Source: Phallusia mammillata (Eukaryota). From it: DNA of 64,000 nt. Numbering within the stretch: position 1 is the first letter of the stretch; each line of letters starts with the position of its first letter. The notes beneath the pieces were generated by a model. The model saw only the letters and a list, made by a program, of their open reading frames with translations. It made no database searches and was not told the origin of the DNA. The position numbers were made by a program, and so were the translations under genes. Of this stretch, positions 2,722-51,410 are shown one piece after another. Location: NCBI GenBank assembly GCA_965637545.1, contig OZ281496.1, positions 13,578,001-13,642,000 of the forward strand, in the 5' to 3' direction.

Positions 2722-4744
2722 TCTTAACCTGTGAACCATAGGGTTGAGCAATAGAAAATGGAACGACTGTGATGGGGCAAGTCAAATCAAGACGTGTTGC
2801 AGATGAAAGTTTGTGTTTTTGGAAACGACTACCATCATGCGGATGAAACTATCCCTTAAACCAGTAGATCTCAAACTGGGCGTCGCGATGCTGGTGCGTC
2901 GCAAGACTAAACAAACTTTTCGACATAGTACACCTCATGCGCCTGACTTTAGGAAACATGTAATTTAACTTTTATAATTTATAAAAAAACAAACAAATCG
3001 TGTAGGTGCTGTCCACTAGCCAAGCCATTGGAGTATATTGTTTATGCCATCGTGCTATTGCGTTTATTGTTCTGCTTATTCATGCATGATACGCCTACTA
3101 GGCGGTCTTTATTACTTGTCTTATTATTGCATATACGCCAATTAGGCGCTCACTTTTTTTATTGTCATTGCATGAGGCGTTTTTCTACACATTGCGAAAG
3201 AACGAACAATCGAAGCTTGTCGTAGCTTCCGAGCATGGCTCGATGCACGTACGTACTTTTATCACTTTCCCACGAGGAATGAATACTATTATACTTCATG
3301 CGAATAATTATTTACACCAATATACTCATGAGTCCCATCTCAATTTTAGGTTTTAGTTTCAACATGGCTAGCTTGGGGGCATTCCTATACATTAAAAACC
3401 CGAAATATATTTTCGTATTTCAAATCCTATACATTACAATCTAGTTGTATGCCATATTTTATAAAACATACTTTTTCTTCTGCAATTCGTCAAATACAGT
3501 CAGCCAAGACTACCGCTTCAATTGCCAAGTTTGTTGCCTGTCCAATTGTAACACATAATATTGAATTCGATTCTCAGGCAATAAATACGCTGCTCTACCG
3601 CAATTGCTATGTTCTATTGTTACACATTAAAACGTAGCAACGTATGTGTGAAATAGATGTCATTGTTAGCTTGGGAGGTTAAGGACGGTGGTAATACCTT
3701 TCTAATTTGTAGTGACGCGGTTATAACCTTGAGATTCATCAGCGACTATTAACATTAAAATCGATAACACTACACCGCTGTAGCGAATTAAGTCATACTA
3801 TTTCATTAAATCTAAAACGGTAAATTTGTAGAATCCAGTCAAGTATTTCATTTTGAATGGTTTTAGAAAACCCCTTTAAAAACTGTAAGTGTTTAGATGC
3901 AATATGAACTAATCCTTCAAAGAAGAGCTTCATCTTTGTCCTTGTGTCCACGTAAGTGATTTTCGAAGTCAGAACGAAATGCAGTCTATTATTTTGGAAA
4001 AATTTCAAGATTTTTTTTCACCTTTTCGTTGTGTTCAATAATTGAAAGTCTATATACCTCACTAAGTTGTTCCTTAATAATCACAGTTCCCAAAAGTGAA
4101 AGTGAAACTTTGTCCACATGCGTTTTTGACTCTTTTGGCTACATTTGTAAATCCATTTTTGTCCAGCATTTTTCATCACCTCCAAAGAGCAAACATGGAA
4201 AACAGAGCAGTGCATTTTCAACTTCACAACCACAAAGCCATTTTTTCTTTTGATACCATTCAGAATTAAAACTGCATATATATTTCTTGTTGTGGCTCAT
4301 TCCTGGCTGACTAAGTTGAATTTTAGGTGTTGGACGCCCTTTTTTCTTTATACTTACCTTTTCAGCACTTGATAACTGCGAAAACTTAAGTTGCTGAATC
4401 TCACTGACAGTCACCGAATGCGAATCTTGAAAAGCCATGATTTACCTTTAAATCAAAAAAGAATAACTGTCGAACTTAAGAATATGGTACACGGGTTTTG
4501 CTTTGGCACACAATAGACCTGGAACAGACGACTACATGCCGGATTGTCGTTTCACACGCTACGTGATTGGGGGAGCTACGTGAGCCGCAGCACCCTGTCG
4601 CCTACTTCGCCCCGCATGTAGCTTTTCCAAGTGCGCATGTACACAACTGCAAAACGTCATGAAACTGCACCCAGCATGGATAACTTATTAGCTTTTTATC
4701 CTTTTAAAAAAAAAGGTGACCAAGATGCAAATTATGCTGATTAT

Positions 4745-21538: not shown

Positions 21539-23909
21539 GCTCTCGGTCTTTTTGTTGCATGGTCACAGCAAGTCCACTACGGTTACGCGAGTTTTGACTA
21601 CAATGGCGAAGGCTTGGAACGTGGTAGCAAGCCGTGAAGGAAGGCATGCGTGCACATTGGCAAGAAATCTCCACTCACACCCAAAGGTCGGAGTGGACCA
21701 GGATATGGGGGAAAAGAGGTGCCACCAAGAAGCAGGATAAATTTAAAGAACCTCACAAGATCCGTGTGGGTTGTTTGGTCTTATGTAGTCCAGCTACAAC
21801 AATGCTTCGCATATGCGCGACGAATACGAGGCACTTGAAAGCCAGAAAAACACTCTCGAAAACTCGGCAGAGGAAGCGGTCGTAAACCCTTCTTTACCAT
21901 CAGCTACCTCCTTCCCAGGCATTGATAGTTAGAGACCTCGAGGGCGGGACGCCCGGCAAAATGAACTTCGGAATCCGGGAGGGGGCACATCGGGTGCCGC
22001 CGCTATCGGTGTAATAAAGCAGTTTACACATACTTTACATAGATCGTTTATGTTGATAAAAATGCAGAGTGTCCAAAGTTGTTTCGATAAAATGAAGGTC
22101 CTCGAAAGGAAATTGGATGTTTACTATCCGCTACCGTGTACAAAAATCAAGCCAGCGACTCAACAACACTAAGGTTATATGCGTGCGTGCCTATGAAAAT
22201 TTAGTCAATGAATGCAAAATAAGCGAACTGAAGATTAGCGACGAGTGTTATGCATTGAAGAATTAAATTGCAAAATATACGACTAAAGTAAGTTACTTTA
22301 TGAAGGAAATGGATGTATCAACCCTATATAAGAATTGTTTGCAAGAAGTGCATTGAGGAGAGGCCTGCGAAACGGGCAAGAATTGAAGATCGCACAGGCT
22401 CGCAGGATTTATTTAACCCAACGGACAACTGATCAAACCAACTGGTTTTGTAAGGTGTATAAAATTTTCCAATGGAGATAAAAACAGGTTTTCGAAAAAA
22501 TGTTTGATTCAGCTATGGCATTTTTACGCGCTCACAACTGCTTATTACGAGGGCAACAGCAAGCTTCAACGGACGAGATGAAACGCGTGGACAAGTAATG
22601 TTAAATCAAACTATGTACGAGGCTAAGAAAGAAATTACGTCAATATTCAACAAACTCAGACAAGGAACGAGAAGCGCAACGACAGCTCGGTATTGTTTCA
22701 CTTTTAGACACCGACATAGCGGGAAGTTCACAAAGCTTCTCACAACATAGTTTTAAAAACCACCGTTCACTAAATTTATCTGTGGATAACAAAGCTGGGG
22801 AAAGTGGCACCGAAATCGAGCCAAAACCAGAATGCCTGAGCAAAAAAATGACTTCTTAGTTTCAACATGCATGAATTAGTGAAAAAGATCGTACTCACTT
22901 CCGATTCTTCACGTTTCAGACTTTTTACACGTCTCTCCCTTTGCCTATCTTTTTCCCTAAATCTTCGACTTTGTTTTTTTCCCATATTAAACAAAATTTT
23001 TCTTTAGGCACAACTTAAAATACAATTCAGAAAGCTATGCGACAGGAGTTAACTTTAGATTTGTCATCATGCGTCACATAACACTTTTTTAAACAACATT
23101 GTAATTGGGACGGTAATTTTGTAAATGGTTACGACAGTGCAGCAAACGTACACCATGTAAAACGCTTGGCAAGGTCAAGGGGTCAAGTTAGACGAAAATT
23201 TGGTAATTGTTTACCGGTATGTGCTTGTTGAGAGATTGTTTATTCAAGTTGTTTTGCTTAGCAGCTAACAAAACAGAGAAAGATGAATTTTGAACTTAGC
23301 GATGAAATTCTTGTGGAAGTATTAAAAAAATACAGGTCTTTGTACGACCTCGTGACAAATTTGCGAAAGAAAATGCCTGGAAAGCAATTGGGCTATATTT
23401 AAACATGGAAGGTAGTGTGATGTAAAAGCAGACAGACAGATTTAGAATACTACATACTTTTTTTTGCTTTAGATTCCTCTAAAAAACATGTGCATGTTAA
23501 GGTGCGTTTACACTACACGCGACGCGAAGCGACCCGTTATCTTTTTGCCTTGTTTGTGTTGAAGCGTTTACACTACACGCGACGCGACGCGAATGTCGCG
23601 TCGCGTCGCTTTGAATCGCTTCTGAAGCGAAAAATCGCTTTGCGCGTGTACTGTTGTGAACTAGCAGCCTGTGCTTTTTTTAACTTTTTCAAATTTTGAT
23701 AGCTATATGCGTGGTTTGTTTTGCTACTAAAGGTATTTGAAACTGAAAACGTAATCAAGGATGATAGAACTAATTGCCTCAATTATGAATTATAGCCTTT
23801 GTGTCACTGACATTTGTTTTAGACCCTTGGACAGGATGCTAGTCCTGGTTTGGTTATTGATTTACACTAAAATAATAAACTTTTTTTAAGGTTTTAGTTT
23901 TAGCAAACA

Positions 23910-25020
23910 ATGGAAGAAATTTTAATTAACAAAGTGCGGGATTTTCCTGCTTTGTTTAATACCAGCATCAGCGATTACCACAATCGCAACATCAAAGACA
24001 ATTGCTGGCTTAAAATAGCTTCTGAGATGAACACACCAGGTTAGTATTGGTGTTTTTTTTTTACTTTTACAGTATGCAAAACAACTTTTAGGGCTAGAGT
24101 ATAGTAAGCAAGTAGTCATTATGTTAGTATAAGGCATGATTTTTACTTTTACAGTTTGCAAAACACTTTCTTAGAGCTTGGATATAGTAAGCAAGTAGTC
24201 ATTGTGTTAGTATAAGGCATGATTTTTACTTTTACAGTTTGCAAAACATTTTTTAGTGCTAGAATACAGTAAGCAAGTGGTTGTTATGTTAGTAAGGCAT
24301 CACAGAAAGTCAGATGAGACATTTTAAAAATGTTTTCAGTTAAAGACATAAAAGAAAAGTGGAAGGCATTGAGGGATAAATACGTGAAAATCAAAAGAAA
24401 AGAAATGAATGTGAGGTCAGGCTCAGCAGCATCCAGCAGTTATAGTTGGAGTCTGTATGATGCAATTTCTTACATTGATCCTTATGTAAAACCCAGGAGG
24501 TAACAGTCAAAACACACTTTTTTGTTGTTACATTTTTTGTTGTTAACAATTTGATATTTTGTAGCACCACAAGCAACTTAGATGAAGACACTGTCACACT
24601 AACCCTGGAACCGTGCTGCAGTGAAGATGAGTTTTTCACAACTAAATCTCCGGATAGTGCCATCAAAAGACCAACCAAAAAAAGAAAGGAAATGGATAGC
24701 TTTGAAAAAAAGATTTTCGAGCTACTGGAAAATGATAGTAAGTTTGTTGTTGACAGGCATGTCTTAAATACTTTGTTGTACTTATAATTTAACAATTGTA
24801 CATGTAATTTTTTGCCAAAAGTCAAAAATCAAAGCCAACTTTTACCATTTTTTGCCAAAGTTTATACTATCATTGCATTATGTTTGAAGCTAAAGAAGAA
24901 GACCCTGACCGAATGTTCATGCTATCATTGGTGCCTAAACTAAAAGACTTGGACAAGAAAAAGGCATCTGAAATCAAAATTAAAATTCTAAATTTATTTC
25001 ACCAAGCTGAATTCGAATAA
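23910..25020 (+). CDS. MADF (Myb/SANT-like) + BESS domain protein, 197 aa, 4 exons
   Basis: Exons 23910-24039, 24340-24499, 24565-24737 and 24890-25020 (594 nt, all GT-AG). MEEILINKVRDFPALFN...NCWLKIASEM...KEKWKALRDKY; C-terminus DPDRMFMLSLVPKLK...EIKIKILNLF. Confidence 0.88.
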
Positions 25021-25096
25021 CAAACGAAACAAAATGCAATAAATACAAAACAAAACTCTTCTAGCAAAGTTGTGGTTGTGGTTGTTGTTGGATTCA

Positions 25097-26462
25097 TTAA
25101 CACCTGTTTATCCTGTCCAGCTGCCATGAAACCTGACCCTCAGTACTAAAATAATTTTTGAAGATTTCCCTCACTTTAATGGCAGCATCAGAATTTCTTC
25201 GTCCTTGTCTTTGTATATTTTGAAACCCTTGTCCCTCTTCTCGCCAACTGCCGTCAGTAATGTGACCCTGTCGGTCTTCCCGGTCAAAATCACGGTCATC
25301 ACAGTAGCAGTACCGTAAATAATTGTGTAGAACACAGCATGCTTTTACGACAGCATCAGCTCTACACGGAGAAAGTGGTATGGGCCTTCGGAAAACCCGC
25401 CATTTTGCAGATAGTATGCCGAAGGTATTTTCGACAGTCCGTCTTGCTCTAGACAAACGGTAGTTGAAGATTCGTTTTCCTTCTCCAAGGTTTCTTCCTG
25501 GAAACGGCCTCATGAAATTGGTTTTTAAACCGAATGCTTCATCACCAACGAAGACATAGGGAGCAACTTCATTGCTGCCACGCAGTGTCGAACACCCAGG
25601 AAGGTCCAATTCGTTCGCTTCTAATTTTTTTCCGAAAGCGGAATTGGCAAATACACTGCCATCTGACTGCTTACCGAAAGCCCCCACATCCACACATATA
25701 AATCGGCATTGCGAGTCAGCTACAGCGAGCAAAACAATGCTGTGTGAATGTTTGTAATTATAAAACATCGACCCTGAATTATTTGGTGCCTGCATAACAA
25801 TGTGTTTGCCATCAACACTTCCCACACAGTTTGGAAATTGCCAAAACTGGTCAAAATCTTCTGCAATTTTTACCCAATCTTGCCTCGATGGAATAGGCAT
25901 GACCTCATTTCGCAATGTCTCCCATATAGCAGCACATGTTTCCGGTACAGCATGGCATATTGTTGATTTTGATGTTCGGAAGGATGCGGCAATTGTCGAA
26001 TAAGAATCGCCAGTGGCTAAAAACCTGCAAAACAGCAGAACGGCTTAATAATCGTACGCTATAGGCTATGTAATTTTTTAAAGCCTACCGAAGCGTCAGT
26101 GCAAGGCGTTCTTCAACGGAAATGCTTGTTCTCAAATGAGTTCTTTGCTTCTTTATCTTCGGTCCAATTTTATGCGCTAAAAAATCAAACGCTTCTGGCG
26201 TCATTCGAAAATAAGTCCGAAACTCGGAAAGTCTTTCGAGGCGCAACTCCAAAATTAAACGATGAAATTCACCTAAAGAAAGTATTTTTAGCTAAAAATC
26301 AAACCTGTTTTCACTGTATAAATAGTTTCTTAACTTACCAAGTTCGGACCTTCGCTGCAAAATCGGATGGACCCACCAACGTCGCGCCCGTCGTTTCTTT
26401 AGAGCCATTCTCCTGGCTATCAATAACAAGGCTACGTTTCTACTTTTTTTTGTACCAACCAT
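25097..26462 (-). CDS. Harbinger DDE transposase (HARBI1/DDE_Tnp_4 family), 411 aa, 3 exons
   Basis: Exons 26462-26339, 26272-26089 and 26024-25097 (1236 nt, GT-AG). RRWWVHP, FRMTPEAF, LRFLATGDSY; catalytic VDGKH, GDEAF and VENTFG all present. Confidence 0.92.
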
Positions 26463-27249
26463 GATAAAAATCTGTGTTTGTCTCTTTTTGTGTCAGTAAA
26501 AAGAGTTATAACTGGTTTCTAATGACAACGCGCTTGTGCGACACCACAATTAATAAGCAAAAAATATGCAAGTCACGCGAAATTGTTACCGATAGTGTAA
26601 ACAGTTGATCGCTTGCGCGGCGTGCCGCGTTGCGTCGCGTGTAGTGTAAACGCACCTTTAGACTATATGTCATGTGCAATTTCAATTATTAATTATGTAT
26701 CAGTTGCAAAGACCTTTTCCCCTACTGATGTATAGGCCAGGTAATAAAATACTGATAAGGATGTGATTGTATGTGTGTATAATGTAGTATACTTTACTGT
26801 TATTACGGAAAATTGTATTAATTTTATGCAGTGCATATCCTTGATTCCCGTATGGCCTGTGGGGGTTTCATATATCTTGTATAGTAACATACTTATAGCA
26901 TTTCAGTATAGCCATGGCCTGCCTTATTTTAATCTTTAATACAAAGGAACTAACTTGAATTTCAACCAGGTAATGAAATGAAAAAAAGTGGAAGTCCCTG
27001 CGGAATAAGTTTACCAGGGAGAAAAAAAATCTCTGAAAAAGTCCGGCTCAGAAGCCCCAACTGCATCGCAGTGGTCATTGTACCCTGTGATGCAGTTTTT
27101 AGAAAAACAAATGGAGCCCATGTCTGGATCAGTGCTCTACAACCTTTTTAGTGGCACGGAACCCTCAAGGTGTTTTGTCAAACTTCGCGGAACTCCCCAT
27201 AAAATAATTTTATTGTAATACAAGTATCAAAGAAATAACACACCCCAAG

Positions 27250-28445
27250 CGCAATATTGACTTCAATTAAATGATTCATTGAAACGCATTCCCATGTTGC
27301 TTGGATCGGTCGTTTCCACATTCTTGCAACTTAGCCAAAAAGTATCAAGACTGCGTTGTTTCCACACCCCAAATGTGCGCTCAATTTTTGTTCGGGTTGC
27401 AATATGTGAGCGATTATAATTTCTCTCTTTCTGGCTACTAGAGTTTATTAATGGCCATCATGTATTTTCTGCAAGCATATCCACCGTCTCCAAGCATTAA
27501 ACCTTCAATAATACAATGTTCGAGCTGGTAATACAAATGGCTGTTGTCAAATATCCTGATGTCATGAGTAGAACCAGGCCAACGGCAAACAAAATTGTTA
27601 AACAGCCTGTACATTAATGGAAAAGAAGCCTTTTCTATTTCAATATATTTCTGCATTTTCTCCGATTGCTCCAATAACATTGGGAAAACCTGCTACTGCA
27701 TAAAATCCTCATTTGATGGAAAATCAATCAACAGTTTGTGTTGTTTAGCAATTGCTCTTGACACCCTGTGAATAATGCGACATGAAGATGATTGACTGAT
27801 GCCTATGAGATCTCCATCAGCTTTTGAAAATGTGCAGTTGCAAAAAATCGTAATGCTGTACAGATCTGCAACATGGGTGGAATGTAGTTGTTTTTTTGTT
27901 GTTGCGCAGACGAGGTCATCTTCAATTAAACTCAATAGTTGAAGTACATTTTCTTTGCAAAACCGAAATCTGCTATAAAATTCTACATCATCAAACTTCT
28001 CAATTGGATTGATTCTGTCTCTTATGTTTCTTTTCAACAGTCTTGTGGTTTCTGTGACGTTATTACATTTTCTACACTTTCTATCACCTGGATTGCATCC
28101 ATTTTACTGCTTTGAAATAAAAATATCTGCACTGAGGCAAGCTGGAGAGTGGTGATTTTTTTTAAATCAGATTTAAGTATTATTTTTACATTTTTTGGTT
28201 AATGCACACAAATAAAGCATAACCAAACAAAAAACCTACTTTTTATCCCGGTTAAAATGCCCAAACAACCCAAAATTCAACTTAATCCATCCTTAAACCT
28301 GGGGTAGGGCAGGATTAAAATTTCGCCCATTTAATCCGAGATTAAAATTTAATCTCGGTTGGTGAATACGACTACCAAGGATTATCCCTTACTTAATCTA
28401 GGATTACGTTAATCTAGGTTTAATCTGACTTGGTGAATTCCACCC
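27250..28445 (-). mobile_element. HARBI1-type Harbinger remnant (left end lost)
   Basis: RDRINP...FYSRFRF, RWPGSTHD, GDGGY and IERTFG motifs with frameshifts; terminus GGGTGGAATTCACCAA at 28445. Confidence 0.8.
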
Positions 28446-50082: not shown

Positions 50083-51410
50083 ATGAACAACCGCTCCGCA
50101 TTGAAAAGGGCCCGAGTAGTTCGATTACTCGCCATTCTTCGCCTTTCTAGTCAGAGCAGAACAGGTAGAAGCATCTGGATGAAGACTACCAGACAGCGAC
50201 GACCTGTTTTAAGTAAGTGAATGTTGCTGTTGCCTAAAACCACTTTAAAAAAAAATTAGCAGGAGGTTTAATTCTTTCAGGTGAATATTATCGCCTGATT
50301 CGGGAACTGCGACTTGAGCAGGTTGCAGAATTTCAGACTTATTTCAGGATGTCGCCAGCAACTTTCGACCAGTTGCTTTCGTTAGTTGGACCTCCAGTGT
50401 CCAGACAAACGACTAATTATCGGAGTCCTATTTCACCACGGTGAACAAGTTGCAGTAACTTTGCGGTTAGTTATAAGTTGTTTTCTTGCACTTCATTTCA
50501 ACAGTAATATTTATGTTTTTGCAGGTATTTAATGGGTGGAATGACGTACGAGAGTTTGTCACATTCTTATCGCATGTCAAAGGCATCTGTTTCTACAATA
50601 ATACCTGAAACTTGCCAAGCCATTTGGCAAGTTTTGCAGCCAAACCACATGGCAAAACCAAATGCAGAGGATTTTGAACGAATTCCCTCTGATTTTCACA
50701 GGTTATGGCACTTGTCTAACTGTCTTGGTAGCATGGATGGTAAACACATCCAAGTACAGGCCCCTTCCAACTCGGGTTCCCTGTACTATAACTACAAGGG
50801 CTCTTTTAGCATTGTTTTGTTCGCAGTTGTAGATGCAAACTATCGTTTTACGATGGTGTTGACATCGGGGGATACGGCAAACAAAGCGATGGCAGCATCT
50901 ACAGCAATTCTGTATTTGGAAGGCAGTTATCAAACCACCAGTTGCCGATTCCTTTACCACAACCCTTGCCTGGATCATCGGAGCTCCTGCCATGCGTTTT
51001 TTGCTGGAGACGAAGCTTTTCAGTTACAGAAAAACTTGCTTCGTCCTTACCCAGGGAGGCAATTATCCCACCGCCAACGGGTTTTTAATTACCGGCATTT
51101 TAGGGCCAGGCGTATAAAAAACGTATTTGGTATAATGGTTTCCCGCTTTCGAGTGTTTTGCGGGCCGATTTGTTTGGTACCAGAAAGGGTGGATAATGTG
51201 GGGAAGGCGTGTGTTCTTCTTCACAACTTCCTTCGCCATGAAAGTATGTATGTTGGGCCGAGTGATCTCGACCACGAAGATAGCAGTGGCGAATTACATC
51301 CTGGCAGTTGGCGGGAGGAGTAAAAAAATAGTCTGGGGTGCATTCAAAGGGTTGGGCGACGTCATAGCACGCAAGCATTTGAAGTGAGGGAAAAGTTTGC
51401 AAAGCACTGT
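50083..51410 (+). pseudogene. Harbinger transposase pseudogene, 3 exons
   Basis: GEYYRLIRELR, FRMSPATF, MDGKHI, GDEAF, NVFGI(M); several frameshifts and a stop at 51321-51323. Confidence 0.88.

Follow-up and report, generated by a model that had tools for sequence, protein, structure and literature searches.

PIF/Harbinger transposons depend on two proteins, one DDE transposase plus one MADF partner that binds subterminal motifs, and both are needed (PMC9710019, PMC13668399). MADF proteins are the usual product of the second gene (PMC9710019, PMC13668399, PMC11893794, PMC10027918), and in the published picture a Myb-like partner binds short terminal and subterminal motifs (PMC9710019, PMC13668399). 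For Harbinger3_DR, an element of the zebrafish that was reconstructed (Sinzelle et al. 2008, as reported in PMC9710019 and PMC13668399), these two accounts state that the partner binds the motifs and is required for the nuclear import of the transposase. The first well-documented active family of nematode Harbingers was reported in 2026 (PMC13668399). We analysed a stretch of 64,000 nucleotides from the ascidian Phallusia mammillata (contig OZ281496.1, positions 13,578,001 to 13,642,000 of the forward strand), hereafter the window, which carries a PIF/Harbinger element of 3158 bp at window positions 23500-26657. The element combines a DDE_Tnp_4 transposase with its D, D and E residues, a TTA/TAA target-site duplication (TSD), terminal inverted repeats (TIRs) and a second gene that encodes a MADF protein, and we are highly confident that it is a genuine, recently mobile Harbinger. 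To our knowledge, only a small number of animal Harbingers are on record as intact in nature and mobile in the recent past, and our literature search found no report of a Harbinger in Phallusia.

The evidence for recent mobility comes from the comparison of copies. Searching the DNA of the whole genome (240 Mb), we recovered six full-length copies of a young subfamily that are 99.3-100% alike, the window copy among them, and besides these a set of older copies at 74-90% identity. Aligned with one another, the six copies have 0-5 substitutions each in 3.17 kb. None of the six has a broken reading frame in either gene, and differences at the protein level are confined to two copies, L003 (one amino acid) and L006 (two). 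One pair of copies, L004 (C3:997908-1001077) and L005 (C3:981682-984851), lies 16 kb apart with 1.5-kb flanks that are 100% identical on both sides, and this pair arose by local segmental duplication or through duplication in the assembly. That the whole subfamily multiplied in this manner, and not by transposition, is very improbable: the flanks of the other copies are unrelated, each copy ends exactly at its inverted repeats and is bounded there by its own TTA or TAA duplication, and the copies represent five independent sites on three chromosome-scale contigs. On the basis of the flank and TSD alignments, duplication was rejected as the source for five of the six sites.

DNA contigs also show an element-less allele at this locus. 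Contigs from two DNA runs of different studies, X1 and X2, depart from the window sequence at 23459, and in X1 a contig rejoins it at 26671; the loose contig ends overlap into 36 other letters between these two positions and contain no element. The filled state is unreadable in the same two runs. Near-identical copies at independent sites, together with the element-less allele, indicate that the family moved very recently. The copy-number and identity check proposed by the first-pass annotation of the window gives six copies at 99.3% or more, five independent sites and separate TSDs. The X1 and X2 contigs further carry T, T and G at positions 23868, 25080 and 25570, a combination present in no copy of the assembly, which implies that the young family varies between individuals.

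Two observations concern the choice of target. L002 (C8:3451260-3454429) and L004 occupy, in opposite orientations, exactly the same TAA within two host-repeat copies that are 88% alike. The TSD is followed by G in every one of nine insertions, and this G often by GCT, which hints at a target preference wider than TWA.

The ends of the window copy are those expected of an intact insertion (Table 1). The first-pass annotation had described identical 26-bp TIRs and a perfect TTA duplication, and both hold when the two ends are compared letter by letter. The inverted repeat extends imperfectly to 38 nt at 89%, and its perfect part differs in length among copies (26 bp in the window copy, against 28 bp in its sisters and 31 bp in the older subfamily). 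The inverted repeat recurs internally, as a second copy at 23564-23591. Between the ends, the MADF-BESS partner gene and the transposase gene are convergent, with stop codons 76 bp apart. This structure is not a product of chance, because the same structure is found at five further loci. Among database proteins, the closest one shares 91% identity and carries the label Phallusia mammillata in UniRef.

We joined the gene models by script for the frame checks, and ran the Pfam and homology searches exon by exon. The three transposase exons form a coding sequence of 1236 nt (411 aa) without internal stops, with GT..AG limits at all introns, and the DDE_Tnp_4 profile (PF13359) matches exon 3 over its entire length (positions 1-158 of 158, 7.8e-37). 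The catalytic residues D174 (VDGKH), D264 (GDEAF) and E301 (VENTF) occupy invariant columns when exon 3 is aligned with 15 diverse homologues. The exons are colinear with a 410-aa homologue from Styela clava (P0003), of which they cover residues 20-38, 40-99 and 101-410; since a split codon supplies the one residue at each junction, both splice sites are supported by homology. The homologues bear the names HARBI1 or ALP1-like in databases, as might be expected if this were a domesticated pair of host genes of the HARBI1/NAIF1 type and not a mobile element. The intact TIRs and TSDs, the presence of several copies at non-syntenic sites and the element-less allele make such a pair hardly credible.

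The partner gene has four exons that join into 594 nt (197 aa), again without internal stops and with GT..AG introns throughout. MADF (PF10545) is split between exon 1 (profile positions 1-37, 5.5e-8) and exon 2 (positions 44-83, 5e-5), and BESS (PF02944) matches exon 4 at 5.7e-8, in agreement with the protein atlas. An N-terminal MADF and a C-terminal BESS thus stand on one open spliced frame. For both genes the rebuilt models reproduce the lengths, open frames and canonical introns given in the first-pass annotation, and its reading of a DDE triad and of a MADF-BESS partner agrees with the alignments and with Pfam. Taken as a whole, the element is probably a copy of a young, autonomous-type PIF/Harbinger family that moves by cut-and-paste in the ascidian genome.

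Table 1. Features of the Phallusia Harbinger element, with positions in the 64-kb window.
Feature	Positions	Strand	Basis or remark
Left TSD, TTA	23497..23499	no strand	sequence reading and copy alignment
Left TIR, 26 bp perfect, imperfect on to 23536	23500..23525	+	AGGTGCGTTTACACTACACGCGACGC
GTTTACACTA, left terminal copy, candidate protein-binding site	23506..23515	+	motif search
GTTTACACTA, left subterminal copy	23566..23575	+	motif search
Perfect palindrome with 14-bp arms and GCGAC repeats, beside the left subterminal GTTTACACTA	23579..23609	no strand	
Partner exon 1, first half of MADF	23910..24039	+	rebuilt model; Pfam; donor used in RNA contigs
83-bp tandem repeat, 2.9 copies, partner intron 1	24058..24294	no strand	repeat reading
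Partner exon 2, second half of MADF	24340..24499	+	coding-conserved; absent from spliced RNA contigs
Partner exon 3, linker with basic KRPTKKRK (resembles a nuclear localisation signal, by eye)	24565..24737	+	model and RNA contigs
Partner exon 4, BESS motif and stop	24890..25020	+	model, Pfam, RNA contigs, protein atlas
AATAAA 3' of the partner gene	25038..25043	+	RNA contig reaches 25062
Transposase exon 3, DDE_Tnp_4, D174/D264/E301, stop	25097..26024	-	model, Pfam, alignments
Transposase exon 2, N-terminal helix-rich region	26089..26272	-	model; exon 1-2 intron spliced in RNA run X15
Transposase exon 1, start codon	26339..26462	-	rebuilt model; homologue alignment
GTTTACACTA, right subterminal copy	26593..26602	-	motif search
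Right TIR, 26 bp perfect	26632..26657	-	exact inversion of AGGTGCGTTTACACTACACGCGACGC
GTTTACACTA, right terminal copy	26642..26651	-	motif search
Right TSD, TTA	26658..26660	no strand	sequence reading and copy alignment

The older subfamily gives a view of the longer history of the element. Two of its copies, L007 and L008, are full length and are broken by one stop and by frameshifts. Two others, L009 (C2:19612489-19614882) and L010 (C4:7686770-7689162), represent a 2394-bp derivative without exons 1 and 2 of the transposase and without the start of exon 3; L009 keeps an open MADF-BESS frame of 197 aa, and L010 has a frameshift in exon 4. The TSDs are TTA in L007 and L009 and TGA in L010, and those of L008 are mismatched (TAA/TTA). 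L009 and L010 are 99.5% alike and occupy different sites with different TSDs, which implies that the derivative moved as a partner-only element.

Every splice site is kept between the young and the older subfamily. In the comparison of the two, partner exons 2 and 3 differ in length by +6 and -6 nt respectively, both in frame, and these exons are otherwise of the same length. The ratio of nonsynonymous to synonymous substitutions (dN/dS), estimated by the Nei-Gojobori method between the two subfamilies, is 0.077 for the partner gene (0.02, 0.059, 0.138 and 0.072 for exons 1-4) and 0.134 for the transposase. These ratios indicate long-term, strong purifying selection on all exons. The low value for exon 2 and its preserved frame imply that this exon has been translated in frame through the history of the family.

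The two subfamilies do not differ to the same degree along the element. Identity is 92% over the first 200 bp and 75-87% in the interior to about position 1600, where the partner gene lies; it is 90-96% in the transposase half (with about 10% divergence near positions 2800-3000) and 99% in the last 158 bp. The synonymous distance (dS) reaches 0.89 in the partner gene, compared with 0.195 in the transposase. Given this uneven divergence and the contrast in dS, the young element looks like a mosaic of two lineages, which suggests that the young subfamily is recombinant, its halves corresponding to window positions 23700-25100 and 25100-26657.

To assess expression, we used two RNA runs from different studies, X15 and X17, in the form of assembled contigs, which drop minor isoforms; their status as RNA was a guessed label, confirmed only by the GT..AG joints. 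For the partner gene, the joint 24039>24565, which leads from exon 1 directly to exon 3, occurs in one contig in each run, and the joint 24737>24890 is likewise present in both, in X17 on the contig just named and in X15 on another one. The partner transcript is composed of exons 1, 3 and 4, and in X17 it continues beyond the AATAAA (Table 1). In the transposase gene, intron 1 is spliced (26272>26339) in X15, that is, in one study. The RNA junction support that the first-pass annotation had proposed as a check therefore exists for partner exons 1-3 and 3-4 and for transposase intron 1, but inclusion of exon 2 and splicing of intron 2 were unseen. One further joint was observed in X15, 65 nt long, with GT..AG limits and in + sense at 25421-25487, inside transposase exon 3 (depth 5.4). 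It could derive from read-through of the partner transcript antisense to the transposase, the two genes being convergent.

Whether the element is able to move today from its own products is a narrower question, on which we find the chances evenly balanced. Several observations, most of them from the RNA, weigh against the reading of the element as a young copy of autonomous type. Young-family exon 2 has no cover in X15 or X17, compared with a depth of 13-44 over exons 1, 3 and 4 (in X17 the depth at exon 2 is 0, and in X15 there is one 4.8-deep contig with six mismatches that comes from a deleted, diverged copy). This gap is not an artefact of filtering, because the DNA runs cover exon 2 normally. 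No full-length partner isoform with exon 2 was seen in the contigs of the two runs, from which a minority form may be missing. For the transposase, intron 2 was found only unspliced, in one X15 contig with two mismatches; RNA is low and patchy over exon 3 in X15, partly from diverged copies, and X17 has none. Messenger RNAs for the two full-length proteins are thus absent from the contigs, in which minor isoforms may have been missed. The RNA contigs carry G at 23868, as do four sister copies, and the T of the window copy was not seen, so the window copy itself is not shown to be transcribed.

The remaining points of this kind concern the DNA of the locus. The three changes private to the window copy are all non-coding. 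Upstream of the transposase start 7 bp are deleted at 26545, a further 5 bp are missing at 26631, and at 25080 G stands in place of T. The second deletion removes one GCGTC unit of the right end that all five sisters carry, and these two losses near the right end may have an effect on the element. In the element-less allele, about 22 nt around the target are replaced by TGAAAA (6 nt), which reflects either haplotype divergence or an excision scar. For the insertion polymorphism that the first-pass annotation had named as a check, this allele is a candidate; the site is not cleanly empty. That annotation had also called the element potentially active, and the open frames, the recent mobility and the spliced RNA agree with this; the partner RNA, on the other hand, encodes 48 aa and not 197. 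Skipping of the 160-nt exon 2 shifts the frame, and the product consists of the first half of MADF and five further residues. The full-length partner protein is likely to be scarce in the sampled material, and this scarcity may limit present activity, or may confine activity to tissues or stages outside those sampled.

Across exon 2 and its splice sites the six young copies do not differ, apart from a single base of L006, 11 nt upstream of the acceptor, and a copy-specific mutation does not account for the skipping. Exon 2 might instead be skipped constitutively, perhaps owing to the tripled 83-bp repeat in intron 1, with the young copies spreading in trans by means of the MADF-BESS protein of the older subfamily. 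We regard this as unlikely, although several observations fit it. Skipping was seen in two RNA studies, and the young copies carry 2.9 units of the repeat, whose stretch is about two units (about 165 bp) shorter in the older subfamily. The 2394-bp derivative shares its ends with the young element; L009 retains the frame for a complete MADF-BESS protein and, judged by its resemblance to L010 at a different site with a different TSD, has lately been mobile too. The ends and motifs are 92-99% alike between the subfamilies. Against it, a connection of the repeat with skipping is conjecture, the RNA contigs were compared with the young element, and the partner frame is open in each of the six young copies, none of which has more than one amino-acid change there. 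These open frames are weak evidence against supply in trans because the copies are so young.

Skipping of exon 2 could also act as a regulated brake on transposition, with full-length partner and mobility confined to, for example, the germline; we hold this idea to be doubtful, and slightly more so than supply in trans. Most tissues would then make the frame-shifted message and, from it, a stump of half a MADF domain, and internal initiation could yield a BESS-only peptide of 58 aa that might interfere with the full protein. A comparable logic underlies the P element, whose splicing is tissue-specific. The literature that we searched describes no splicing-based control for PIF/Harbinger elements.

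For the family as a self-contained two-gene Harbinger, the sequence of the ends offers candidate binding sites. The motif GTTTACACTA has four matches in the window, all at the ends of the element, where 0.24 would be expected by chance. On the left they begin 7 and 67 bases from the end of the element and on the right, inverted, 7 and 56 bases from it, and all four are kept in the older subfamily. The left subterminal copy lies within the internal copy of the inverted repeat, and GTTTACAC is found also in the inverted repeat of a second Harbinger family. By analogy with the zebrafish and rice systems, the MADF-BESS protein would bind the four candidate sites of GTTTACACTA type, two at each end, and would meet the DDE transposase through a protein-protein surface, possibly BESS. 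The partner may then help to carry the transposase to the nucleus, for which its basic KRPTKKRK stretch could serve, and to the ends of the element, where the transposase would cut at the inverted repeats and insert at TTA or TAA. From what is known of Drosophila MADF-BESS proteins (PMC5982830), BESS may serve in dimerisation or in the recruitment of the transposase.

Harbinger-like sequences with and without BESS are found elsewhere in the genome. Of 18 BESS matches from six-frame searches, the young copies account for six and the older subfamily for two; among the others, at least five have another DDE_Tnp_4 match at a distance of a few hundred bases, with which they converge. L031 is one such locus: its inverted repeats are AGGCTGGTTTACACG, its MADF exon matches at 4.4e-6 and its BESS exon at 3.4e-10, and together with the young family it shows that at least two Harbinger families in this genome have a MADF-BESS partner. 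DDE_Tnp_4 matches number at least 150, most of them without an adjoining BESS match. They are strongly clustered at 11-18 Mb of C3 and at 6.4-7.1, 13-14.2 and 22.8-23.5 Mb of C6, and the window has a further one at 50733-51227 (+), with 77 bits and an open frame of 271 aa. Closer to the element, the left flank at 23301-23411 (+) shows by eye a frame-shifted, MADF-like first exon that ends at a GT donor, for which Pfam gave no significant match with the 21-aa MADF-like piece, and the right flank at 27441-28037 (-) contains a fragment of DDE_Tnp_4 on the opposite strand (9e-7). The young element seems, from these remnants, to be nested in an older, dead Harbinger-like unit.

This element is ordinary in kind, its MADF partner is textbook, and what is modestly new is its BESS tail and its exon skipping. 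Its interest lies in a family of the chordate lineage with both genes open in several copies, which makes two-component transposition directly testable in ascidians. MADF-BESS proteins, known mainly from Drosophila host genes, are here tied to a living transposon, and exon skipping provides a concrete and readily testable idea of how such an element might be restrained. Use of the element as a transgenesis tool, as the first-pass annotation proposed, is speculation.

Among described systems, Harbinger3_DR resembles the Phallusia element in its DDE transposase and Myb/SANT/MADF-type partner, its 3-bp TSD, its TIRs and its repeated subterminal motifs. As far as the two accounts cited above describe the zebrafish element, the Phallusia copies differ from it in being naturally intact, with convergent genes and introns in both, in a partner that ends in a Pfam BESS and in a main RNA that skips an exon; they are known here from sequence. 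The Harbinger-1M_cIno/Turmoil2 lineage of Caenorhabditis inopinata is likewise an animal PIF/Harbinger for which there is evidence of current or very recent mobility (PMC13668399). MADF-bearing derivatives without transposase have spread in that nematode (PMC13668399), and L009 and L010 are their Phallusia counterparts; the DDE gene is retained there at only one locus (PMC13668399), whereas Phallusia has six two-gene copies. In the literature searched, BESS comes up solely in connection with host proteins of Drosophila, as a motif for protein-protein interaction (PMC5982830), and not for PIF/Harbinger partners. The Phallusia partner shares the MADF-BESS architecture of Dip3, Stonewall and Brickwall but is encoded by an element, beside a transposase, and its BESS is assigned by Pfam match only. 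Finally, the DDE_Tnp_4 domain is common to vertebrate HARBI1 and the Phallusia transposase, but HARBI1 and NAIF1 are single-copy domesticated genes without ends, whereas the Phallusia genes lie within an element whose ends are intact.

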